Positions 13,431 to 61,801 of a DNA stretch of 64,000 nucleotides are shown here, in pieces. The notes under the pieces are model-generated. The model did not search any database, had not been told where the DNA came from, and worked only from the letters and a program-made list of their open reading frames with translations. Origin of the DNA: Ruditapes philippinarum. Taxonomy: Eukaryota. The stretch's first letter is position 1, and each line of letters starts with the position of its first letter. The stretch spans positions 62,001 to 126,000 of the forward strand of contig NW_026851668.1 in NCBI RefSeq assembly GCF_026571515.1, in the 5' to 3' direction. The translations under genes were made by a program, and so were the position numbers.

Positions 13431-39254
<25,824 letters not shown>

Positions 39255-47149: not shown

Positions 47150-49318
47150 AGAAAAGTGCACCTCATGTAGCTTCAGAGTTATGTCCCAGACAAAGTTCAA
47201 AGAGCAATAATTCCATAATTAGGCATGGAGTTATTGCTCTTTGCACTGCACTTCTATTCAATAAGATCTATCTACCAACTTAATTTCTTGTTGACATCTC
47301 TTGTAGTTTCACACTTATTTCCCTCACTGTGTGAAATGGGCAATGATACCAAAATTAAGGAAGGCAGAATTACGGTTCTTTTGCGCTGCATATCTAAGCA
47401 ATGAGATCTATCTACCTAAAATGTTAATATCTCTTATACTTTCTGGGTCATGTCTTGGACAAGGTTTAAAGTGCAAAAAATGAACAACGGGCAATAATTC
47501 CAAATATTAGGCAAGGCAAAGTTACGTTTTTTTGCACTGATCATCTACCAATGAGCTCTATCTATATACAAAGTTTCTTTTTCATATCTTGTATAGTGTC
47601 AAAGTTATGTCCCTGACAAAGTTCAAAGTGTAAAAATAAACAAAGGGCATTAACTCCAAAATTAGGCAATGCAGAGTTACGGTTCTTTTGCACTGCACAT
47701 CTACCCCATGAGATCTATTTACATTCAAAGTGCCTTGCACATATCTCTTATTCTTTCAGAGCTATGTCTTGGACAATGTTCAAAGTATAAAATGAACAAA
47801 GGGCAATAACTCAATATTAAAGGAAGGCAGAGTTACGATTCTTTTGCATTGCACTTTTATGAGATCTATCTACCCACAAAGTTTCTTGTTGATACCTCTT
47901 ATTGTTTTAGAGGTATGTCCCGAATAAAGTTTAAAAAGTAAAAATGAACAAAGGGCAATTACATCAAAATAAAGCAAGGCAGAGTTACCGTTCTTTTGCA
48001 CTGCAGTTTAATTTCACGAGATCTATCTACCTACACATTTTGTTTTTGATATATATTATACTTTAAGAGCTGTGGTCCGGACAAAGTTAAAAGTGAAACA
48101 AGAGCGATCAGTGATCACACGTGTCGCCTCATGATGGCCAATTTCATGTTGGGACAAGTTTTGTGACAGACGGACAGACAGACGGACAGTGCACAACTAG
48201 ACTTGGTACTGATCATTCCTGTAAGGTTTGGATAAAATTGCACCACTAGTTTATGAGGTGTAGTCCGGACAAGATTTTGTGTATCTGGCAACACACAGAA
48301 AAAACACATTTTGATCAAAGGGCCATAACTCGGCCAAAAATCATTAATTCAGAAAACCCGTGCAATATGCGCAAGGACTGGAGCTACAGATCAAGCCTGT
48401 CAACTTTCATTGAAATTGCATTAGTGGTATAAGAGAAGTAGTCCGGACAAACTTTAAAAATAAAAATTATTAAATGGCCATATTAACTCTGACAAAAATC
48501 ATTGAACCGAAAAATGCTGACAATATGCACAACTAAACTTGGTACTGATCATTCCTGTAAAGATTGGATGAAATTGCACCAGTAGTTTATGAGGAGTAGT
48601 CCGGACAAGCTTTTGTGTATCTGCCAACACACAGAAAAAACACCTTTTTATCAAAGGGCCATAACTCGGCCAAAAATCATTCAACCGGAAAACCCGTGCA
48701 ATATGCGCAAGGACTTGAGCTACAGATCAATCCTTTAAAGTTTCATTGAAATTGCATTAGTGGTATAAGAGAAGTAGTCCGGACAAACTTTAAAAATAAA
48801 AATTATTAAAGGGCCATAACTCTGACAAAAATCATTGAACCGGATAATGCTGACAATATGCACAAATAGTCTTGCTACTGATCATTCCTGTAAAGTTTGG
48901 ATGAAATTGCACCAGTAGTTTATGAGGAGTAGTCCGGACAAGTTTTGTGACGGACGGGACAGACAGACGACGAAGAAGTGATCCCTATATGTCGCCACTA
49001 CTCCGTAGAGGCGACACAAAAAATGAACTGCACTGCACTTCTGCCCAATGAGATCTATGTATCTGCAAAGATTCATGTTGATATCTTTTATAGTATTAAA
49101 GTTATGTCCCGGACAAAGTTCGACAAAGGGCAATAACTCCAAAATTAGGCAAGGCAGAGTAATGATTCTTTGACACTGCAATCCTTTTCAATGCCCTCTA
49201 CCACTGTGTGCAGTTTTAACAAATTATGGCCAAGGGTTTTTAAATTTTGCTCCGGACAAAACGGACGGACAGACGGATAGGCCGGCGGCTGTATGCTCTC
49301 CGTTCGGGGATCATAAAA
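47150..49318 (-). mobile_element. HINE-like element with about 155-bp tandem repeats, split by a nested element
   Basis: Units aaagggcaataactcc...gcactgcac...atgagatctatctacc; ggac/agac microsatellite and terminal hairpin at 49260-49318. Confidence 0.75.
48097..49023 (-). mobile_element. Nested HINE-like element (second family)
   Basis: Ends aacaagagcgatcagtgatcacacgtgtcgcc and atgtcgccactactccgtagaggcgacacaaaaa; alternating tandem units with gtagtccggacaa; relics near 1790-2070, 3950-4120 and 61330-61626. Confidence 0.8.
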
Positions 49319-49638: not shown

Positions 49639-51213
49639 AAACAAGAGGGCCATGGTGGCCCTGAGGTCGCTCACCTGTATAAAGGCACCCAGAGCGGGGC
49701 AAGTTTAAACTCCAGGGCTTTTATTTGAACAAACTTGGAAGACACCCATTAGAAGATGTTTCACGATGTTAAGTTTTTACTACACACATAAAATGAAAAA
49801 CAACAATCTACCCCCCTCCTCCCCCCCCTCCCTGGCAGGGCCAATTTTAACCCAAGGGCTTTTATTTGAACAAACTTTGTAGACACCCATAAGAAGATGT
49901 TTCATGCTAAACATCTAAGCTCTAGCTCATTGGGTTTTTTTAAAAGAAGATTTTTTAAGTTTTTACTATACACATATAGTTAAAATCAATGACACCCCTG
50001 GGGCAGGGCCAATTTTGACCCCAGGGCTTTTATTTGAACAAACTTTGTAGACAATTACTAGAAGATGTTTCGTGCTTAATATCTTAACTCTAGCTATTTG
50101 GGTTTTTTCAAAGAAGATTTTTAAGTTTTTGCTATACAAATATAAGGAAAATCAATTACACATCAAGTTTTTACTATATGCATATAGGGAAAATCAATGA
50201 CCCCCTGGGGCAGGGCCAATTTTGACACCAGGGCTTTTATTTGAACAAACTTTGTAGACACTCATTAGAAGATGTTTCTTGCTTAATATCTAAACTCTAG
50301 CTATTTTAAGATTTTTAAGTTTTTACTATATGCAAATAGGGAAAATAAAAGACCCCCTGGGGCGGGGCCAAATTTGACCCAAGGGCTTTTATTTGAACAA
50401 ACTTGGAAGACACTCACTAGAAGATGTTTCATGCTTAATATCTAAACTCTACCTATTTGGTTTTTTTTTCAAAGAAGATTTTTAAGTTTTTATTATATGC
50501 ATATAGGGAAAATCAATGACCCCCTGGGGCGGGGCCAATTTTGACCCAAGGGCTTTTAATTTGAACAAACTTGGTAGACACTTATTAGAAGATGTTTCAT
50601 GCTAAATATCTTAGCTCTAGCTCTTTGGGTTTTTTAAAAGAAGATTTTTTAAGCTTTTACTATATGCATATAGAGAAAATCAAAGACCCCCTGGGGCGGG
50701 GCCAATTTTGACCCCTGGGCTTTTATTTGAACAAACTTGGTAGACACTCACTAGAAGATGTTTCATGCTAAATATCTTAGCTCTAGCTCTTTGGGTTCTT
50801 TAAAAGAAGATATTTTAAGTTTTTACTATATGCATATAGGGAAAATCAAAGACCCTCTAAGGCGGGACCAATTTTGACCCCAGGGCTTTTATTTGAACAA
50901 ACTTGGTAGACACTCATTAGAAGATGTTTCATGCCAAATATCTAAGCTCTAGCTCTTGGGGTTTTCTAAAAGAAGATATTTTTAGTTTTTTCTTTCGGTT
51001 GCCATGGCAACCAGAGTTCTGCATGGAATTAAATTCTTTGAACAATTTTTAAAGGTGACCACCAAAGGAACATTCCTGTGAAGTTTGGATGAAATTGGCT
51101 TAGTGGTTTATGAGGAGATGTCATTTAAAGTAAAAGTTTACGGACGGACGGACGACGGACGAAAAGCGATCACAAAAGCTCACCCTGTCACTTTGTGACA
51201 GGTGAGCTAAAAA
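49639..51213 (-). mobile_element. Helentron-associated interspersed element (HINE/DINE-1/pearl-like) with about 8 tandem units of about 167 bp
   Basis: Palindrome agggccatggtggccct, subTIR gctcacctg, tandem array, ggac microsatellite, hairpin agctcaccctgtcactttgtgacaggtgagct followed by aaaaa. Confidence 0.9.
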
Positions 51214-52190
51214 GTGCATAAATTAAAGATCAATAATAAGATAAAAATCTTCATTAAACAATAATTGGGAAAAAACTTGCATCCATATAAAATAGGATGA
51301 GGTTTAAAGTATATTATTAGCTGTCAATATTTATAACATGCTATATGACCCAGTATTAACTATTATAAGTTAAATCAGTGTCTCTTTGAAAGCTTATATA
51401 ACAAGCAGTCATATAACCTGAGAAAAGTGTTTATAATAAATTTATAATACAAATGCTTTCTTCAATTAAGATGTTACTTATTTATGAATTTGCAGCATCT
51501 GTGTATACAAATGTAACAAGTGTCAAATGAAAATCGATATTACAAACGTGTAAAACTCCAATTGTTGATACATTTTTAACAAAATAGTCATAACAAAGAA
51601 TAGTGATACTGCCTCTAGCGCTCTTAAAAGGGGTTTCATTGTAGGAAAAATACCTATGAAGTTTTAAAGGCACTCACAATGTTTTATGAGGAGATCCTGT
51701 GGACAGGCAAAACATTATTAATTCTTTTGGTCTCCTTTCGTTTTCCTCTTCATTTTTCCAACGTCTATGAATGTATAAATTTTTTGACACATTCGTAAAA
51801 ATCACACATGTTCTCTGATTAAAATGCCGTTAAATCCGAAGAAATTAATTCCTTCTTTCCCTTAATTGAATTTAAGTATAAGTATGTACACATACCAGTA
51901 AAATCTATAAACTATTCAATACAAAGAATAGTGTAGTAATCTTATTACCAGTATTTTTTTTATTTTCCTCACTCGTAGTAAATGTCTACGAGAATGATTC
52001 TTGCCGACCAGGTTCGTGTTTAACTGTGTCTGCATCATATTATTTGCTGCCATGGTAGACTGCATTACGATTATCAAACAAACAAACTACATTAAGTTTT
52101 ATATTTTGCTATAGGTTCTTGAGAATATTCTCCTTAGAATTTCTCGAATTTGTAATTTGTTGTTTGATGTATCAAAACAGTAACACAACT

Positions 52191-55100
52191 TTACCACGTT
52201 TGTAAAGGAGGCAAGTTGTCTGTATAGATACGAAGTACGCTGCCTTTACATTTATAAGAAGCCCAGCAAAACATTTTCTTAGTAGTGAATGTTGTTGCAG
52301 CCAGAACTCCACATTCAAAAACCAAATCACAAATTGCAGGACTTATGAAAAATACATCTAGTGTCTGTGTTTGGTCATACAGCCTTAAATCTTTGTTTGG
52401 ATTATATGATGTGTATTCTGTTCCTGATTGTACTTTAATGATAAATTTCTTTTCACTTAATTTGTCTGGAGGTTGACCTTTTCCTAAACCTGGTAACGGA
52501 GCATTAGTCCCCCGGACTACAGACTTTCCAGGACTGAGAAAATCGTTCCATTTCACTGTATTTACCATCTTAATATCTACTGTAAAGTTTTCAACAATGA
52601 GTCTGCATATTGACTTGTGTCGTTTCCAGTGATGTGTCTGACATTCCTTTGAACAGTAACTTGCCTTTTTACACTTCGCACAGTATTTTAATGTTTTGGA
52701 AATAGCATGACAGAAACAACAGGTTTCTAGAAGGACTGCCATCTTATTTGGATGTTGCTGGCCTCTATTGTTTTTCTCAAAAATATTCCTTGTAGTAATA
52801 ATAGGTGGTATTGAAAATCTAGTGTTCTCATCATCCAACATACCTTTACTTTTCATCATCGGACTTGCGGGAAATGACCTTCTAAAATGATTCTTCACAT
52901 CTGGTGTCAATGTGTGAATAGCAGGACCAGTATGATCCCGAATGGAATTTCCATCTAATACAACTACAGCAGAATAATTTATTCCAATCCTTATACCACC
53001 GCATTTATTCTCAAATATATCGTTGTTGCAAATATTTGCTGTTGATCTAGATTTTACCATCATTCCCCAAAGCCAGTTGTCAAAAATTTTGTTTCCGGAT
53101 ACATCATATGACCCTCCATCTAATGAAATTCCTGACATACCATTTTGATAGATCAAATTATCAAATATCTCGCATGTAGACCCACCTCCTGAATCTGTTG
53201 TGACTGCTAAACGTGATTTTCCTACAAATGTTATGTTGCCGCCACACCAGATACCTTCATTTTTGTTATTCTGTATAATACAATTTTTTATATGTCCTTT
53301 TCCCATTGGTCCTATAGCCACCCCGTGATACTGATTGTCACAAATTGAGCAATTTCCAACAATGGTAGTGCCACCATCTCTTGCTTCAATACCCATCTGT
53401 CTCATGTTACAAACAACACTGTTCTTGATCTTTAACACAGCCCCTCCTGTACTTACAGTTCCACCACCACCGCACCTATCAAGAAGACAATTGTCTATCA
53501 ATACATTTCCATTTTTAGTTGCACAAATGCCTGGAAAACCAACAACGCCACTGGGATGCGGAGCTGACAAATTCCTTTTTTTCAAAAATAAAGTACTGCA
53601 TTCGTCAGGATATGGATTGACACAACCGGAATTACCATCGCAAAATGGAAAGTTTTCGCATCCTTTTTTCCCGTTTGAGAATTTGCATTTGTAGAATATT
53701 GCATTAACATTAGTGTGGATTGTTATTTGACCAGTATCATTTGGAAAAGAGACGTTTTCAAAATAAACATTTATTTTTTGTTCGATCTGAAACTGGGGCA
53801 TAAACTGTTTCGGATTTATTAAAGCAACGCCCAATTCGCTATGAATTTCAACTCCATCCTCAATGCCAATGATCTGAACACTTTTTGTAGTGATCTGCCC
53901 TTTATCAAGCTTAATTTGGTATCTGCCTCTACGCAAAAGTAATGTCGTGTACGTCCTATTCATCATGGACGATATCTCCTCGCCAAGTTCAGATTCATTG
54001 TCAACAATTATGTATCGTACCACGGGATATTCAATTTTCATCCTGTATTCAAGTAAGCATTGTTTGTTTAGGTGTCCAGCAACAGCTGCTGCAGCTAACC
54101 CGGCAGACTCCCAGGATTTGGGTAAAACTTCAAGACGTATGAGATTACTTATTGCATAGGCTTTCCAACAATAGGCTTTGAATGATTTCGGATCAATTTG
54201 TATGCACTTATCTGCATCACGTAAAGCATTCTCATAGTCGCATATTCTTAAGTATGCCAGACTTCTGTTCGTAAGACACTTTGTTATGTCAATGTTTTCA
54301 TTACTTGCTGTGATCGCCTCAGAATAACATTGTATTGCAAGTTGATATCTTCCAGTCTTAAATGCATCATTTCCCATCTTGCGCAACGATTCTTTATCCA
54401 AAAGTGCGATAGTTTGGTCTTGACTTGAATCTGACGATGTATTCGATTCTGCTGGTATAACCATTGTTATGCTACTTTGAAGAATAAGTCTGTCATTCTG
54501 TAAAAGAGGTATCTTGATTCTAGTCAGATAATTATAGTCACGTTCTGAAATTGAAAGAGCCGGTATAATACTCAGCATTTGCGCCTGGCATGCTAAGGCC
54601 TCATCCTGCCTTTGGTACAAACTGTGATATATTGCACTAGTTTGTAAAATCCTTGTTGTTTCTATGTTAAAGCAGATGTGTTTCGATGTTTCATTTCTTT
54701 TTGTGTAGTCAAACAAATAAGTTTTGAGGGTGTTTGCATTGAGTGCTAACTTACTCCACATTTGCAAGGAAGCTCTGCCTATATTTTCCTCTTGTAATGC
54801 ATCCATTGGTGATTGTGTGTTTTCTAACGCCATATTGACCATTCGTGATGCACACTGTAGGATGAAAGCATTTCTGTCTGCATCTTTCATATTCTGTCGA
54901 ATTACCTCCTGAACTAATCGATGCACACTTATGCTATTAGTGGTACATCTGTTAAACAAAGAAAATCGTGATAGTATTTCGGCAACTTGCTTGATTCCCA
55001 ATTCTTCTTCAAAAGTGTCGAGTAGATCTTCGTCAAGTACGTTTGGCGAGCCAACATTCAAAAGAATCATAGGGATATCGTCAGCATATAGGAAGGCCGC

Positions 55101-55649
55101 AATTTCCATCACAGTTCTTGCTGAATTTCCAAGTCCATCTTCTTCAGATTGTTTTTGAATGTATTCAAAGTTTAATTGCCAAGTTGTTCGCACCGCTAAA
55201 CGTTCTTTTGACACTTCATATTGTGATCTTATTGCTTTGAGTACACCTAATCTCTTCCGATTAAATTTCTTCAGATACTCATCAAATGAACAGTGTAAAG
55301 CTTTTATATAAGCAGCTGCTTGTTCCAAAGCAAGTGGAAGTCCACCGAGCTCTTCTGCTAATTTTATGAGACTGTCGTCAATTTTACCATTCTGATCTGA
55401 ACGTATCATCAAAAATTTTACACTTTCATTTCTATTTAAAACATCTAAAGAGATGCAGTCATCCAATCTCACATAAAATGTCTCTTCTGCGTTCTCTGCT
55501 TTTCTCCGAGAAGTGATAATGATATGCCCCTTTGAACCCTTTTTCCAAGGTGAGAGAAGTATTTCTTTCACACTTCCCTGAATTTCCTCCATGTCTACGT
55601 TGTCGATTACAAGCAGCCATCTGTCTTGAACACAGCACAACCATTTAAG
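52191..55649 (-). CDS. STAND gene last exon, part downstream of the frameshift (Walker B, helical/winged-helix, TPR, beta-helix, zf-MYND, C-terminal domain)
   Basis: 1149-aa uninterrupted ORF with ordered domain motifs, TAA at 52191-52193. Confidence 0.95.
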   Translation of the reverse strand, partial: LKWLCCVQDRWLLVIDNVDMEEIQGSVKEILLSPWKKGSKGHIIITSRRKAENAEETFYVRLDDCISLDVLNRNESVKFLMIRSDQNGKIDDSLIKLAEELGGLPLALEQAAAYIKALHCSFDEYLKKFNRKRLGVLKAIRSQYEVSKERLAVRTTWQLNFEYIQKQSEEDGLGNSARTVMEIAAFLYADDIPMILLNVGSPNVLDEDLLDTFEEELGIKQVAEILSRFSLFNRCTTNSISVHRLVQEVIRQNMKDADRNAFILQCASRMVNMALENTQSPMDALQEENIGRASLQMWSKLALNANTLKTYLFDYTKRNETSKHICFNIETTRILQTSAIYHSLYQRQDEALACQAQMLSIIPALSISERDYNYLTRIKIPLLQNDRLILQSSITMVIPAESNTSSDSSQDQTIALLDKESLRKMGNDAFKTGRYQLAIQCYSEAITASNENIDITKCLTNRSLAYLRICDYENALRDADKCIQIDPKSFKAYCWKAYAISNLIRLEVLPKSWESAGLAAAAVAGHLNKQCLLEYRMKIEYPVVRYIIVDNESELGEEISSMMNRTYTTLLLRRGRYQIKLDKGQITTKSVQIIGIEDGVEIHSELGVALINPKQFMPQFQIEQKINVYFENVSFPNDTGQITIHTNVNAIFYKCKFSNGKKGCENFPFCDGNSGCVNPYPDECSTLFLKKRNLSAPHPSGVVGFPGICATKNGNVLIDNCLLDRCGGGGTVSTGGAVLKIKNSVVCNMRQMGIEARDGGTTIVGNCSICDNQYHGVAIGPMGKGHIKNCIIQNNKNEGIWCGGNITFVGKSRLAVTTDSGGGSTCEIFDNLIYQNGMSGISLDGGSYDVSGNKIFDNWLWGMMVKSRSTANICNNDIFENKCGGIRIGINYSAVVVLDGNSIRDHTGPAIHTLTPDVKNHFRRSFPASPMMKSKGMLDDENTRFSIPPIITTRNIFEKNNRGQQHPNKMAVLLETCCFCHAISKTLKYCAKCKKASYCSKECQTHHWKRHKSICRLIVENFTVDIKMVNTVKWNDFLSPGKSVVRGTNAPLPGLGKGQPPDKLSEKKFIIKVQSGTEYTSYNPNKDLRLYDQTQTLDVFFISPAICDLVFECGVLAATTFTTKKMFCWASYKCKGSVLRIYTDNLPPLQTW

Positions 55650-58600
55650 TGTTTAACAAGCGTTTCTTTAGCATTCTGTCCGACAGTATTTGTGTCTATA
55701 GCAAGGCGTTGTACAGAATCTTCCAATGCTTCATTTGTTTCTGCTGACATCCAAAACACACCTCCAGGATAAAATGTTTGAAATGTCCATGCATATTCCA
55801 CCGCCAGTGTTGTTTTACCTATTCCCCCTAATCCGCAAATAACTTGTGTATGTGTTTCACTACTTCGAATTTCAAACACTTCTTGCAGTTGTTCCAATTC
55901 ATCTTGTCGACTAACAAATGTAGAAACCCTGTCCGGGGGATAGAAGAATAATTTCCCATTTGGTCTTACATATGATAGGTATTTTGCTATATTAGCGATA
56001 TCCAAAGTATTTTTATCGACGTCCGATTTTGTACTTTGAAAGTTAAGTGTACTAATTTTAAGAGCTTCTTGTGTCCCCTTTAGTTCATTCTTCACACCAG
56101 TTACCTCTGTATCTATATTATGCAATTCAGTCTTCATCTTTTCAACACTTTCAAAATCTGCTTTATGTGAATCTTGCATACCTGTCACCGCATCTGTCAA
56201 CGACAGTATGTCCCCATTCATCTGAAGACTCTGAGTTTCAATGTTATTTATTCTTTCAAGTGTATTGTTTAACGAACTTTCTATTGACAGTATAGATTTG
56301 TGAACAACTTGAAAGCTCATATCATTTTTTGAAACAACATCTAAAATGAACTTACTTAATGCTCTAGTCTCATTTTTAAGTTCTTGCACCAGTTCAACTC
56401 CAAGTGTTGTCCCTTGCAAAAATTGCAGACCTGTAAGATAAATTATCTTTCATATTCCATAAGTACCCAAAGCTATCACACTTATAATTTCATAAATTGT
56501 TTAGATAATCGAAATTTGTATATAAATGTAAAAAATGTTTTAATAATTATGACCTCATTCATATTGTAAGAAAAGTAAATCAAAGTTCCTGCCATTAGCT
56601 TATCGAAAGAATATCTTAAATAAAACATGTCAAACGAACCATTTGTTTGCCACTGCATCAGTTGGGCAAGAATTTCTGTCTCATCTTGAACTGGAAGTAA
56701 CAGATTTTTTATGAACTGTTGCATCAGTTGGAATGAGTTTTGGTACTTGATCACGTCCCACTCGGAAAAGTTGCAGTGTGCCCAAGGATTTCGAATATCA
56801 GACCTTAACTGTAAAACAATTTTTTTATTTTCAAATATACCTTTATAAATGACAGGAGATCGTATAAATTAAATGTCTAAATGTATACTGTCACAGGCAA
56901 TGTATATATATGTATGTCTAGTGTTACTGTTGTAAACTTATAATTCGTTTGACATCATTAAACATATTTGCACGCCTTGTTTGTTTTATTTCAAATAAAT
57001 CAATGATTTGAATCGTTCGAAGATCCTTAAAGATTTTAAATAAAGTGATACAGTAATTTAAATATTTTTAAAAAAATAAGTACCTTTTTAGCCGTTTTTT
57101 GTGGTAGAACTGGGAAAGTATCTATATTAACAATGATCCCCAGGAGAGCTGAGGAGTCACACGTGTCATCGAATCCGGTATAGTGTGCCATGCTGGTAAT
57201 CATGAACAGTTTAGTCAGATCTACATCGTTTGTTACATCATAGTTGTATTTCTGTTCATCCTTTTTCCCTTTCACTTTTGGTATGGCACTGTTGTTATTG
57301 ATCGCCTCGTAGTTCAATTCTTTGTTTGTAGGTTTATAACGCTTCATGTGTTTAGCAAATGTTTGTGCGTCTATCTTGTCTGTTTGCTTCAATTTGTTGT
57401 AGAGTTGGCTTACAACAGGGGGGATATACTTTCTTAATGCAGGAGATATGACACTGTGTAGACATATTCCAACAATCAGCCATCTTTTTTGGTCATCTTC
57501 TATATCAGGTTTAACTACTGTATAAAATAAAAAAAAAAAAAAAGAATTTTAAATTACAATATGAAATCAAGTTCCGTGCTATACGGTTAGTTAGAAAAGT
57601 TTGTATGATATTTGTTGACATAAAACGTGTGAGTACCTACACTTACCTCAAGTCAGAATATTAAACCACTTATTGTTCGTTAGATATACAGTTTTCTATA
57701 GAAACAGAAAAGTTATAAAATGTTTTGGCCAATTAAAATGAAAGTTACTTTGTTTGCCAGACGCTAGAAAGATGCTAAAACTGCAGCTTGTAAGGTGACC
57801 TGATGTCAATTCTACAAATTTTCAAAACTGCTACAGAGCTCAAATTAATACGACACTATTTTATTTCCTACCATTGAATTGCCGTATTCCAAATAGCTTT
57901 ACATATCGTTTATTAGCACAGAGTGCTTTAAATTAATTCTTAAAACTTGTATTAAAATATCACATGTACGTTCACGACATTACTCTCCTGAAATAGCAAT
58001 AACTATTTGAATACCTAATTTTAATATATAAATACTATACAACAACGTTCGAACTGCTGCTGCTGTAACTACGTCAGTAAATTCCCGTAACCTAGTTTAA
58101 ACTCTAATGTTCATGCCTTCAGATCAACCACAATATATCCAAAAAACAACCTTGAGACAAATGAACTTAGACTTTTAAAAAGTAAAAAGTACTCACAATT
58201 CAAACAAGAGGGCCATGATGGCCCTTAAGTCGCTCACCTGTATATAGGCCCCCGGAGCGGGGCCAGTTTAAACCCCAGGGCTTTTATTTGAACAAACTTG
58301 GTAGACACCCATTAGAAGATGTTTCATGCTAAACATCTAAGGTCTAGCTGGTCAAGTTTTTTCTTTACACATATAGTTAAAAACAATGACACACCTGGGG
58401 CAATGCCAGTTTTGACCCAAGGGCTTTTATTTGAACAATCTGTGTAGACACTTACTAGAAAATGTTTCATGCTTAATATCTAAACTCTAGCTATTCGTGT
58501 TTTTTCAAAGAAGATTTTTAAGTTTTTTGCTATACACATATAGGAAAAATTAATGTCACCGGGGCGGGGCCAATTTTGACCCCAGGGCTTTTATTTGAAC

Positions 58601-61600
58601 AAACTTTGTAGACACTCACTAGAAGATGCTTCGTGCTTAATATCTAAACTCTAGCTATTTGAGTTTTTTCAAAGAAGATTTTTTAAGTTTTTGTTATACA
58701 CATATAAGGAAAATGAATGACCCCCGGAGCAGTGCCAATTTTGACCCCAGGGCTGTTATTACAACAAACTTGGTAGACACTCACTAGAAGATGTTTCAAG
58801 CTTAGTATTTAAACTCTAGCTATTTGGTTTTTTTTCAAAGAAGATTTTTTAAGTTTTTGAAATACACATATAAGAAAATCAATGACCCCCGGGGCAGGGC
58901 CAATTTTGACCCCAGGGCTCTTATTTGAACAAACTTGGTAGACATCCATTAGAACATGTTTCATGCTAAATATCTTAGCTCTAGCTCTTTGGGTTCTTTA
59001 AAAGAAGATTTTTTAAGTTATTACTATATGCATATAGGGAAAATCAATGACACCCTGGGGCGGGGCCAATTTTGACCCTAGGGCTTTTATTTGAACAAAC
59101 TTGGTAGACAACCATTAGAGGATGTTTCATGCTAAATGTCTTAGCTCTAGGTCTTTGGGTTCTTTAAAAGAAGATTTTTTTTATGTTTTTACTATATGCA
59201 TATAGGGAAAATCAATGACCCCCGGGGCGGGGCCAATTTTGACCACAGGGCTTTTATTTGAACAAATTTGGTAGACACCTATTAGACAATGTTTCATACT
59301 AAATATCTTAGCTCTAGGTCTTTGGGTTCTTTACAAGAAGATGTTAAGTTTTTACTATATGCATATATGGAAAATCAATGACCCCCTGGGGCGGGGCCAA
59401 TTTTGACCCCAGGGCTTTTATTTAAACAAACTTGGTAAACAACAATTAGAGGATGTTTCATGCTAAATATCTTAGCTCTAGGTCTTTGGGTTCTTTACAA
59501 GAAGATTTTTATTTTTTTTGCTATACACATATAAGGAAAATCAATGACCCATGGGGCGGGGCCAATTTTGACCCTAGGGCTCTTATTTGAACAAACTTGG
59601 TAGACATTCATTAGAACATGTTGCATGCTAAATATCTTAGCTCTAGCTCTTTGGGTTCTTTAAAAGAAGATTTTTTAAGTTTTTACTAAATGCATATAGG
59701 GAAAATCAATGACCCCTGGGGCAGGGCCAATTTTGACCCCAGGGCTTTTATTTGAACAAACTTGGTAGACACCCATTAGAGGATGTTTCATGCTAAATAT
59801 CTTAGCTATAGGTCTTTGGGTTCTTTTAGAGAAGATTTTTTAAGGTTTAACTATATACATATAGGTAAAAATCAATGACCCCCTGGGGCGGGGCCAATTT
59901 TGACCCCAGGGCTTTTATTTGAACAAACTTGGTAGACATTCACTAGAAGATGTTTCATGCCAAATATCTAAGCTCTAGCTCTTTGGATTTTTTGAAAGAA
60001 GATTTTTCTTTTGGTTGCCATGGTAACCAGAGTTCTGCATGGAATAAAATTATTTGAACAATTTTCAAAGGTGACCACCAAAGGAACATTCCTGTGAAGT
60101 TTGGATGAAATTGGCTTAGTGATTTATGAGGAGATGTCATTTAAAGTAAAAGTTTACTGACGGACGACGGACGGGCGGACGCCGGACGAAAAGCGATCAC
60201 TAAAGTTCATCCTGTCACTTTGTGACAGGTGAGCTAAAAATAAGTTACATGTTATGCGCAATTAAAGATGATTTTTTTCAGTATTTATCTTGATATTTTC
60301 ACTGCATGACTAAAGCAGTAAGGATTTTTTTTGCAAAATCTGATTTTTGTACATGTATATTTTATGTGTAAAAAACCCTGGACGTGAAGATCGTGGCGAA
60401 TTTGTGTTGGGTAATAAAATACTTTTAAAAGATTCTCAAGTTTCATCTTTTATTGTTCTTTTTCGGCTGAGGCCGTATGGTTTGGGTTGTTTGTTTTATT
60501 AGGGTTTACGTCAAACCGACACAGGATAGGTCATAAGGCGACGTTCCAGCTTTACTGGTGGAGGAAGACCTCATGTTGTGTGTTGAACTTCTTGTAAAAC
60601 TTACAGGGAAGAGCTTAATATTTGTAAACATTTCATTGGTCATTTTAAAATTACAATCTCGGAATCTGATAGGCCAATGTAAAATTGTTGTTAAAGTAAT
60701 ATATAAAGGATTTTTTCTGACATGGCAAACGCGTCCACTTTCAAATTGATCAAAAGGAGTTCTGGAAACGAACCACAATGTATCATACAGTTATAAGTTC
60801 TTTAACTATCAAGATAATGCATCCTCGTACAGATTATTTTTCGCTATAAATTTTGCCAAAAATTAACGAAACCACCACTTAAAATGCAAATAGAAAGTTT
60901 TTTCCCCAAACCAAATCTGTCCATGTGCAAAAATCGTTTTAATTCAGTCGAGTATCTTTTTTAAAGATCCTTCTTGTTTATTCTTTCGTAACGCCGTTTT
61001 TCTAACAGGAAAAGACACATAGGTCTAACATCTCTGAAACAAATCTTCTTTTACGATGGTTACTTCAATTGTACAACTGTGGTGTACTCTCCAGAACTTA
61101 TCTGACAATATTTTACTTTTAATAAAGTTTTAACAATTTCGTGAATGTTTACATGAATCTGGAGGCTTGTAGCTATAGATTATCAAAGTAAACTGCCGCT
61201 GTACTGGGATGAATCGGCGAAAATTTATGACTTTTTATGTCGGCTCTACAAAGTAGTGGAAACATCTAGGGCTCACTTCTCCGTCTTCCGTCTGTCCATC
61301 TGTAGGTCTGTCACACAACACTTGTCTATCCTTAAAACTACTAGAGCAAGTTCATCCAAACTTAACAAGAATGAATATTTGGATGAAATTGAACGTATAG
61401 TTTCTGAGGAGTAGTCCAGACAAGCTTTTGTGTAGCTGGCAACACCTCATAAAAACTCCTTTTTTATTTAAGGGCCAAAACATTCAACCGGAAAACCCGT
61501 GTAATATGCCCAAGTACCTAAGCTACAGATAAATCCTGTAAAGTTTCATTGCCAGTGCATAAGTGGTATACGAGTCCGGACAAATTCATTAGGCGACACA

Positions 61601-61801
61601 TGTGATCTCTGATGATCGATCGTGTTACCCCAAACGTTTCCATTGAATTCAAAAAAAATGTAATTTACTCTTACCTTGACTTGAAGATACTTCATTGGCA
61701 ATATCAACAATTATAAGTTCAGCTTCTGGCTCGTTCAATCGGGATGAAAAATCTTCAAAGTTGAAGGACGAAGAAAAGTTTCCAGTGTTGAAAGTCGTCA
61801 T
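52191..61801 (-). CDS. NLR-like STAND protein: HEPN-like domain, coiled coil, NB-ARC-type NTPase, TPR, right-handed beta-helix, zf-MYND (about 1656 aa; one 1-nt frameshift as assembled)
   Basis: Coding exons (minus) 61801-61675, 57517-57084, 56808-56640, 56430-52191 with GT-AG introns and matching phases (1,0,1). Total is 4970 nt, one short of a multiple of 3. Motifs: RNPWAH, Walker A GLGGIGKT (55811-55834), Walker B WLLVIDNVD (55593-55619), IIITSR, LGGLPLALEQA, SVHRLVQ, TPR (GNDAFKTGRYQLAIQCYSEAI; NRSLAYL...ALRDADKCIQIDP), repeated N..xxGI beta-helix turns, MYND CCFC...CAKC...YCSKECQTHHWKRHKSIC. Confidence 0.88.
55650..56430 (-). CDS. STAND gene last exon, part upstream of the frameshift (coiled coil and Walker A)
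   Basis: tcttacag acceptor at 56432-56431; heptad-rich helix; FVSRQDELEQL and VICGLGGIGKTTLAVEYA. Confidence 0.92.
56640..56808 (-). CDS. STAND gene exon 3, HEPN motif (LRSDIRNPWAHCNFSEWD)
   Basis: ttttacag acceptor, G|gttcgt donor, phase 0-1, RxxxxH motif. Confidence 0.85.
57084..57517 (-). CDS. STAND gene exon 2, N-terminal part of HEPN-like domain (DQKRWLIVGICLHSVISPALRKY...DLTKLFM...DSSALLGII)
   Basis: Strong polypyrimidine tacag acceptor, AAG|gtactt donor, 434 nt open. Confidence 0.88.
58202..60240 (-). mobile_element. Second copy of the same HINE, about 11 tandem units, in intron 1 of the STAND gene
   Basis: Same termini and unit sequence as 49639-51213, same orientation. Confidence 0.9.
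60483..60573 (-). mobile_element. SINE 3' fragment (11078 family)
   Basis: ggtcataaggcgacgttccagctttactggtggaggaagacctc. Confidence 0.7.
61675..61801 (-). CDS. STAND gene probable first coding exon (MTTFNTGNFSSSF...VSSSQ)
   Basis: ATG at 61801-61799; CAAG|gtaaga donor in phase 1 matching exon 2; upstream ttacag suggests a further non-coding exon. Confidence 0.6.

Follow-up and report, generated by a model that had tools for sequence, protein, structure and literature searches.

A four-exon gene of Ruditapes philippinarum joining a HEPN-type domain to an NB-ARC switch, a short TPR module, a beta-helix and a MYND finger: member of an old animal family and possible RNase-armed receptor

The minus strand between positions 61801 and 52191 of a 64,000-nucleotide stretch of Ruditapes philippinarum DNA (the window; contig NW_026851668.1, here C155) raises the question whether a ribonuclease (RNase) effector, a STAND NTPase and a sensor are joined in one animal gene, and whether its product could work as a receptor which oligomerises and then cuts RNA. 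A sequence-only reading had proposed exactly this and had described the parts (HEPN RNase, STAND NTPase, TPRs, beta-helix and MYND finger) as a candidate undescribed immune system. The analysis presented here makes the identity of the gene and its architecture, taken jointly, nearly certain. For the complete explanation, which adds the action as a sensor, a switch and an RNase, the scales tip only a little to the positive side.

Six-frame translation and motif mapping showed that the stretch is one four-exon gene, and all motifs read earlier from the letters were found at their places on the minus strand. The exon borders were set from the splice signals and from the intact paralogue P0001 (R. 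philippinarum LOC132726094, 1716 aa), which was the top database match. Exon 1 (61801-61675), read from the sequence, starts with the ATG at 61801-61799, provides 42 codons and one base, is followed immediately by the donor GTAAGA and is 79% identical to residues 1-42 of P0001. Exon 2 (57517-57084), placed between the tandem acceptor CAGTAG and the donor GTACTT, encodes the N-terminal two thirds of the HEPN domain, and exon 3 (56808-56640) encodes its C-terminal third; the domain is thus split over two small exons, as had been suggested. Exon 4 (56430-52191) covers the protein from the stalk to the C-terminus and ends with the stop codon at 52193-52191. The phases are consistent: the single base left by exon 1 belongs to a codon finished by exon 2, exons 2 and 3 abut between codons, and exon 3 leaves one base of a codon completed by exon 4. 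The coding length, with one extra A that is dealt with below, is 4,971 bases (1,656 codons and the stop). P0001 maps with 100% identity to contig C13053 of the same assembly, while the window gene lies on C155, and the two genes are therefore paralogues. Their identity is 81% in the large exon and 91-92% in exon 2; a protein of the window's own locus was not among the database matches listed.

The Pfam search was run on the 1149-aa open reading frame (ORF) of the window and on the exons separately. The ORF matched TPR_1/TPR_2, Beta_helix (E 1.7e-19), NosD (E 3.2e-10), zf-MYND (E 2.3e-7) and DUF7779 (E 3.9e-10). The order of domains established in this way is HEPN, coiled-coil stalk, NB-ARC with winged helix, helical spacer, three-repeat Hop-like TPR, beta-helix, MYND and a conserved C-terminal domain. 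The exon model, the RNA joint described below and the Pfam order all agree with the proposal of one spliced gene arranged as effector, NTPase and sensor.

Public data sets, namely RNA from three studies (X2, X3 and the declared RNA-seq run X19) and DNA of run X13, were aligned to positions 52100-58000. The RNA contigs of all three studies cover the exons, which bears out the expectation that the gene is expressed, and they were found in exonic bins only. The RNA depth was zero in the bins 56434-56630, 56828-57024 and 57616-58000 in all three sets; the DNA run X13, which served as a control for such silent stretches, covered 30 of 30 bins. The joint of exons 3 and 4 was present in both X2 and X3 as a step from 56428 to 56638 which skips 209 bases bounded by GT..AG on the minus strand. 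Of the joint of exons 2 and 3 only a trace was seen, a loose end at 56810 whose 21 letters agree with the end of exon 2 except for two. The splicing of the HEPN exons to the NTPase exon, a prerequisite of the original proposal, was thus observed directly for exon 3 and in this fragmentary form for exon 2. Within exon 2, the RNA contigs span 57169-57514; the joint of exons 1 and 2 lies outside the aligned region. Although such contigs prove the presence of a transcript and not its level, the gene is spliced and transcribed. The alignments of the RNA contigs end at 57514, next to the tandem acceptor CAGTAG (57515-57520), and either AG may be used, with one Val more or less in the protein.

The assignment of the N-terminal domain to HEPN starts from two motifs, CDSSALLG (57161-57138) in exon 2 and RNPWAH (56793-56776) in exon 3. 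The latter displays Rx4-6H with N after the R, which is a trait of the HEPN superfamily. Exon 2 alone matched DUF4559 with E 0.0039 and exon 3 alone matched HEPN_Swt1 with E 0.074 at profile positions 80-112 of 115, i.e. at the motif-bearing end; both matches fall short of the cut-offs. DUF4559 is the CXorf38 family (PMC4554924), which was classed as active Swt1-like HEPN by Anantharaman et al. (PMC3710099). A HMMER scan with exon 2 matched 281 representative clusters. Among the 30 short relatives carrying the whole HEPN domain (alignment A1), nine matched HEPN_Swt1 (best E 1e-6), nine DUF4559 (1e-6) and one HEPN_DZIP3 (2e-14). Similarly, residues 40-245 of P0001 adjoin mollusc clusters with HEPN_DZIP3 and DUF4559 in the Atlas (0.96-0.97). 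The A1 profile produced chance matches to PDB sequences in the coiled-coil tail only.

The catalytic-type motif is kept across phyla, as the earlier proposal required of the R and H. RNxW[AG]H was found in every homologue model which reaches the N-terminus (about 30 models), approximately 220-310 residues before Walker A. The carriers are from Ruditapes, Mercenaria, Mya, Mytilus, Branchiostoma, Oculina and Acropora, and the motif is also present in the N-terminally incomplete models of Limulus and Actinostola. Exon 2 is 42% identical to the Oculina protein (BLASTP E 2e-34), and the A1 profile matched the Acropora protein with an hhalign probability of 100%. From these sequence comparisons, the N-terminal domain is well supported as a HEPN domain of the CXorf38/DZIP3 type.

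The large exon starts with a coiled-coil-like stalk (55943-56430) for which Pfam gave weak matches to coiled-coil families only, and its coiled-coil nature is presumed from the sequence. The length of the stalk differs between copies, the stalk of the window copy being about 60 residues shorter than that of P0001. The stalk is followed by a STAND NTPase of the NB-ARC type (55218-55942) with Walker A GLGGIGKT (55834-55811), Walker B WLLVIDNVD (55619-55593), IIITSRR (55523-55503) and GGLPLAL (55346-55326), and by a winged-helix-type domain (DUF7779, 54876-55133) with SVHRLVQ (54929-54909). The Walker A and B, sensor arginine, GxP and winged-helix His motifs are all present in the window and nearly invariant in 51 homologues, and so is the stretch HRLVQEV. 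The full NB-ARC motif set announced earlier is indeed there, but the frame of the assembly is broken between Walker A and Walker B, which had been overlooked. In intact relatives the NB-ARC domain scored 28.0 (P0001), 43.3 (P0003) and 41.8 bits (P0017) against a Pfam cut-off of 23.5, whereas the two pieces in the window reached 12.9 and 17.7 bits since the break splits the domain. Neither NACHT at E 0.01 nor LRR was found by Pfam in the scanned members from the clam, Mercenaria, Mya and Mytilus; the Limulus homologue gave a weak NACHT match under the cut-off (20.5 vs 26.7 bits). The gene is not a canonical animal NLR of the NACHT-LRR kind and is NLR-like in its logic only.

The C-terminal half begins with a three-repeat TPR of the co-chaperone class (Hop/STIP1, RPAP3, PP5 and CHIP; 54156-54428; Pfam TPR_1/TPR_2/TPR_BSK1_C). 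Its best natural PDB match was STIP1 (E 7.6e-26), followed by SPAG1, RPAP3, TOM70, PP5, CHIP, SGTA and SGT1. TPRs are thus present as claimed, but they form a predicted Hop/STIP1-like peptide-binding module instead of a long sensor array. Because there are only three repeats and the matches are to EEVD-binding co-chaperones, we read the TPR as a peptide-docking module, and the number of repeats led us to reject it as the main sensor. The probable sensor is the part made up of the beta-helix, the MYND finger and the C-terminal domain.

A right-handed parallel beta-helix of the pectin-lyase-like kind with a Cys-rich insert is encoded at 52761-54023. The RDHxGP stretch at its end (IRDHTGP in the window, 52943-52923) is nearly invariant in the 51 homologues. 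An AlphaFold (AF2) model of the last 650 residues, with a mean predicted local distance difference test (pLDDT) of 85.6 and a predicted template modelling score (pTM) of 0.86, contains this right-handed parallel beta-helix. The model matched the mannuronan epimerase AlgE4 with Z 31.1 and a root-mean-square deviation of 2.4 over 307 residues, followed by a phage tailspike (Z 30.3), AlgG (29.6) and NosD (26.4). There were 169 chains at Z >= 8, and Foldseek gave E 9e-8. On the model, the pectin-lyase-like fold can be assigned with high confidence. The MYND zinc finger (52605-52721) scored 31.2 bits in Pfam against a cut-off of 22.7, and its eight zinc ligands (seven Cys and one His, C4-C2HC) are invariant in the 51 homologues. 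Both the beta-helix and the MYND finger of the sequence-only reading are therefore real. A conserved C-terminal domain of about 136 residues (52191-52604, including the stop codon) was recognized from well-conserved alignment columns (A2) and is confidently folded in the AF2 model; it had no Pfam match and no usable match in the Atlas.

The gene belongs to a family that extends far beyond the clam. Proteins of cnidarians, amphioxus, hemichordates, Limulus and bivalves align over 99-100% of the 1149-aa ORF and share the Pfam set, the cnidarian proteins with about 33% identity over 99% of it. NB-ARC, DUF7779, TPR, Beta_helix/NosD and zf-MYND are co-linear over the full length, which places the gene in the family typified by the coral orthogroup OG0000334. 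Proteins of about 1,380 aa from environmental assemblies begin inside the large exon and thus lack the upstream exons. In the FastTree tree of 51 sequences, the cnidarians, amphioxus, hemichordates and bivalves each formed a clade and Limulus branched as the sister group of the bivalves; the window gene paired with P0001 and adjoined Mercenaria. This pattern of the sequences is read as vertical descent with lineage-specific duplication within an ancient animal family (cnidarians, bivalves, Limulus, hemichordates and amphioxus), and the family is, on this reading, not a mollusc novelty.

The bivalve history appears from the sequences to be one of repeated duplication and decay. The clam genome has about eight loci: C155, C13053 (intact), C907 (at a contig end), C4356 (with stops), C12318, C8009 (one stop, several pieces), C13063 and C10474, the last two decayed and C10474 with dozens of stops. 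C4356, broken upstream of Walker B, shares 90% identity with the window gene. It was considered as the other allele of the locus and rejected, since its synonymous divergence (dS) of about 0.15-0.28 and its stops make it a decayed paralogue. When window positions 52194-55619 were compared with C13053 and C907, dS was 0.15-0.26 from the NTPase through the TPR and 0.43-1.2 from the beta-helix to the end. Such mosaic divergence suggests that the N-terminal half may have been converted or exchanged between copies. Between the paralogues, protein identity is lowest in the beta-helix (73-75% vs 85-97% elsewhere). The ratio of nonsynonymous to synonymous divergence (dN/dS) to three paralogues was 0.1-0.45 in every domain.

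How might such a protein work? HEPN nucleases form composite active sites on dimerisation, as is known for RNase L, Ire1, Cas13 and Csm6, and STAND NTPases oligomerise in a nucleotide-dependent manner. By analogy, a trigger would be sensed by the C-terminal beta-helix/MYND module, while the short TPR would perhaps serve as a dock for a chaperone or for some other acidic C-terminal peptide. Sensing of the trigger would free the NB-ARC switch and the protein would oligomerise. The N-terminal HEPN domains, carried on their coiled coils, would then meet and form a composite RNase site able to cut cellular or invader RNA in the manner of RNase L, Cas13 and Csm6. Defence or regulated cell death seems the most plausible setting. 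The RNase action, the oligomerisation and the immune role are all inferred from what is known of HEPN nucleases and STAND proteins, and this mechanism in a defence setting is, in our estimate, a good possibility which falls slightly short of being probable.

Several points weigh against this explanation. The mechanism is an extrapolation from other HEPN nucleases and STAND proteins, and the assembly copy is, as written, frame-broken. The purifying selection and the full architecture retained across the cnidarian-bilaterian split, without a long variable repeat sensor, would fit a conserved cellular role equally well. The exons of the window remain below the Pfam thresholds for every HEPN family, and the Pfam scan of P0001 returned no HEPN family match at E 0.01; as it is the relatives that pass, the HEPN membership rests on transitive homology. 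The fold check gave a divided answer. The AF2 model of the relative P0150 is all-helical (pLDDT 90), and in an exhaustive structural alignment the HEPN domain of yeast Swt1 ranked third with Z 7.8 and gave, with 122 of 136 residues, a longer alignment than any other top-ranked entry; HEPN-MNT toxin, AbiA, Csm6, Cas13 and sacsin HEPN domains enriched the top 50 with Z 5.8-6.5. On the other hand, Foldseek found no match of the P0150 HEPN model in the PDB at E 0.001 or better, and all HEPN Z values are lower than 8 and thus in the noise band of the tool for helical bundles, which makes the fold evidence consistent with HEPN and not decisive. A complex prediction with two copies of P0150 scored 0.01, a value speaking neither for nor against dimerisation.

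The best surviving rival makes the protein a conserved regulator of RNA in stress or proteostasis: the TPR would bind the acidic tail of Hsp70 or Hsp90 and NB-ARC would couple the chaperone or stress state to RNA cleavage by HEPN, comparably to the KEN domain of Ire1 or to sacsin, in which HEPN is combined with chaperone-type modules. The class of the TPR speaks for it most directly, its top natural PDB matches being EEVD-binding co-chaperones. In the alignment to Hop TPR1, whose five-residue carboxylate clamp consists of K8, N12, N43, K73 and R77, the window TPR has R, N, N, K and W at the clamp positions, so that four of the five positions are kept; the fifth, W here, is variable in the family. 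The source names of homologues, 'STIP1-like' or 'Hsp70-Hsp90 organizing protein', the conservation of the architecture from corals to amphioxus and the low dN/dS are also in line with a cellular role. In contrast, the bivalve duplications with decayed copies and a most-diverged beta-helix form a birth-and-death pattern more typical of defence genes, and many NLR-like architectures of bivalves and corals begin with this HEPN type (PMC9646362; PMC10236652). We regard the stress rival as rather unlikely, and the defence setting is retained as the more plausible one for the sensor-switch-RNase mechanism.

That mechanism can be extended to a bolder proposal, to which we give a still lower probability. 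The family would be an as yet unrecognised, pre-bilaterian class of cytosolic receptors in which the pectin-lyase-type beta-helix with MYND reads a glycan or other polymer of microbial or damaged-self origin and NB-ARC assembles the HEPN RNase, a class preserved from corals to amphioxus and lost in vertebrates. If true, this would be an animal STAND receptor which has a non-repeat, enzyme-derived sensor together with an enzymatic effector.

It is also conceivable that the HEPN domain is not a nuclease and serves as an RNA-binding or protein-interaction module, as was proposed for Swt1, with signalling by scaffolding. The closest structural match is the C-terminal domain of Swt1, which Anantharaman et al. 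held to be probably inactive (PMC3710099), and the coral authors term the domain 'RNA-binding' (PMC10236652). Genuine losses of the motif occur among relatives (RSSWAR, QKPWTN, LNPWTH and KNPWAH), the first three lacking the R or the H. Against this, the window gene retains R, N and H, and so does every full-length orthologue, whatever its phylum. RxxWxH is also kept, with R, N and H, in 72 of the 96 anchor matches, counted among relatives that continue for 50 residues or more past the DxSAxL anchor, and many of the remaining 24 are false or have no real continuation of the domain past the end of exon 2. Moreover, the CXorf38 and DZIP3 groups are listed as active or mostly conserved (PMC3710099). 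We consider a non-nuclease HEPN improbable and keep the composite RNase site as the preferred proposal.

The frame break itself lies between Walker A and Walker B, where the assembly has three A in a row (55652-55654). The 270-aa frame runs to its stop at 55610, and the 1149-aa frame can be read from 55640 onwards. As P0001 (LVKTLKWL) makes clear, a fourth A is required. An intron at 55.6 kb was tried in place of the break and discarded: the frames overlap by only about 30 bases, and the sole GT..AG pair spans 33 bases, which is frame-neutral and too short for an intron. An extra base after 55651 was carried at full depth by the RNA contigs of two different studies (46.6/46.6 in X2 and 14.1/14.1 in X3), each being the sole covering contig. 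In the DNA run X13 the aligned depth at the A-run was zero, and one contig ended at 55652 with 17 unaligned letters that, by our own reading, match the longer A-run plus one synonymous change. Since the extra A is present in the RNA contigs and dN/dS is low, the break is probably an assembly error or a rare allele and not the mark of an old pseudogene. A separate observation concerns position 53573 in the part coding for the beta-helix, after which one X3 RNA contig (643 letters, depth 9) has an extra C that X2 lacks (0/28.8); the extra C stems either from an error in the contig or from an allele of that animal with a broken frame.

A pseudogene, with a break real in the sequenced animal and no full-length protein from the locus, is very improbable: the two overlapping frames with the stop at 55610, a nearest protein which is an approximately 81%-identical paralogue (none from the locus itself being among the matches listed), the stops in the sister loci C4356, C13063 and C10474 and the extra C of X3 would suit it, but they are outweighed by the extra A in two independent RNA studies together with the fitting end of the X13 contig, by an otherwise open frame of 1,149 + 270 residues, by a dN/dS well below 1 in all domains and by the fact that errors in homopolymer length are common in assemblies.

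Several repeats were noticed around the gene. A tandem satellite of 165-166 bp occupies 58354-60007 in intron 1 (about 10 copies) and 49694-51200, about 1 kb downstream of the stop codon (at least 4-9 copies). The two arrays run in the same direction and share a terminal unit of about 350 bp (50850-51200 and 59877-60227, 88% identical); they resemble a single satellite-bearing element present in two copies, one on each side of the main exons. Positions 48190-48949, also on the downstream side of the gene, contain a different tandem repeat of 336 bp (2.3 copies, 92% matches). A run of 133 N at 32016-32148 is an assembly gap or a mask.

RNase-armed STAND proteins are well studied in bacteria, while the animal ones have come to light only through domain censuses. 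The clam family is tractable in this respect: it is low-copy, expressed and conserved in full from cnidarians to cephalochordates, and its parts (HEPN, the NB-ARC switch, the Hop-like TPR and a beta-helix of a fold that binds or cuts polysaccharides) are separable. A ligand of the beta-helix, together with RNA cleavage triggered by oligomerisation, would test in animals the bacterial logic of sensor, STAND and nuclease, and it would supply the first mechanistic anchor for the NB-ARC-TPR inventories of corals and bivalves. A practical point is that domain annotation missed the N-terminal effector of this orthogroup and that the clam assembly carries a probable one-base error.

The kind of architecture is not new, as the sequence-only reading had itself recognized in stating that HEPN-STAND fusions are known computationally in invertebrates. 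Anantharaman et al. (2013) described animal fusions of DZIP3-type HEPN with TPR, NACHT, Death and LRR (expanded in oyster and Nematostella), CXorf38-type HEPN with NACHT, and bacterial HEPN-STAND-TPR proteins (PMC3710099). Takeuchi et al. (2022) reported more than 50 HEPN-NACHT proteins in the pearl oyster and Rx4-6H in 194 of 202 HEPN proteins (PMC9646362). Noel et al. (2023) found many N-terminal DZIP3-like HEPN domains on NACHT/NB-ARC proteins of corals, and their supplementary tables contain OG0000334 with NB-ARC, TPR, beta-helix and zinc finger and an N-terminus given as 'noneDetectedN' (PMC10236652). The combination of NB-ARC, MYND and beta-helix was absent from the main texts searched and found only in supplementary tables. 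In view of the published fusions and of the OG0000334 table, the kind is known and the core of the family was already tabulated, and 'undescribed' can be upheld only for the HEPN domain on this ancient family. The literature searched contains no report of a HEPN N-terminus in the OG0000334-type family, of the full architecture as common to cnidarians and bilaterians, or of any experiment on the family. The assignment of HEPN, based on sequence comparison, to the N-terminus of the ancient NB-ARC/TPR/beta-helix/zinc-finger family thus appears to be new.

The closest known system is OG0000334 itself. It is the same family, with cnidarian members of 1383-1606 aa named STIP1 or Hop in their sources, and it differs in that the tables list no N-terminal domain, while we find HEPN with RNxW[AG]H, coral members included. 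The DZIP3/hRUL138-like and CXorf38 HEPN-NACHT proteins of oysters, corals and Nematostella share with the clam gene the N-terminal HEPN with Rx4H and N after the R (PMC3710099; PMC9646362; PMC10236652). They also share the succession of HEPN, STAND NTPase and C-terminal binding module, and both can be proposed by analogy as RNase-armed NLR-like receptors. In contrast to them, the clam gene has NB-ARC in place of NACHT, and a three-repeat TPR, a beta-helix and MYND in place of LRR or WD40. Its family is old and low-copy instead of massively expanded in single lineages, and the HEPN domain of the window is too diverged for the Pfam models.

The bacterial HEPN-STAND-TPR proteins (Npun_F6454 group, PMC3710099) and Avs, compared here by domain superfamily, likewise consist of a nuclease effector, a STAND switch and a C-terminal sensor and are expected to oligomerise. 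Their sensors are long TPR arrays, whereas the clam gene has three repeats and mostly beta-helix and is eukaryotic, with introns. RNase L and Ire1 (KEN-type HEPN), Cas13 and Csm6, in which Rx4-6H forms a composite site on pairing, are the mechanistic model for the clam proposal. They belong to other HEPN families and have other regulators (2-5A, a kinase, crRNA and cyclic oligoadenylate), and the Z values for Csm6 and Cas13 are only about 6. The NB-ARC domains of APAF-1, CED-4 and plant R proteins have the same Walker A and B, sensor arginine, GxP (GLPLAL) and His-bearing winged helix; unlike these proteins, the clam gene has no CARD, TIR, CC-type, WD40 or LRR part and its predicted effector is enzymatic.

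The AlgE4 and AlgG epimerases, phage tailspikes and NosD have, according to the model, the same beta-helix fold (Z 26-31) with about 11-16% identity. As HEPN stands at the N-terminus and no signal peptide-like start is present, the beta-helix of the clam protein would act in the cytosol. A further likeness is to the CASH domains of FBXO11/DRE-1: FBXO11 combines CASH-type repeats with a zinc finger, and one Exaiptasia homologue of the clam gene is named 'F-box protein dre-1' by its source.

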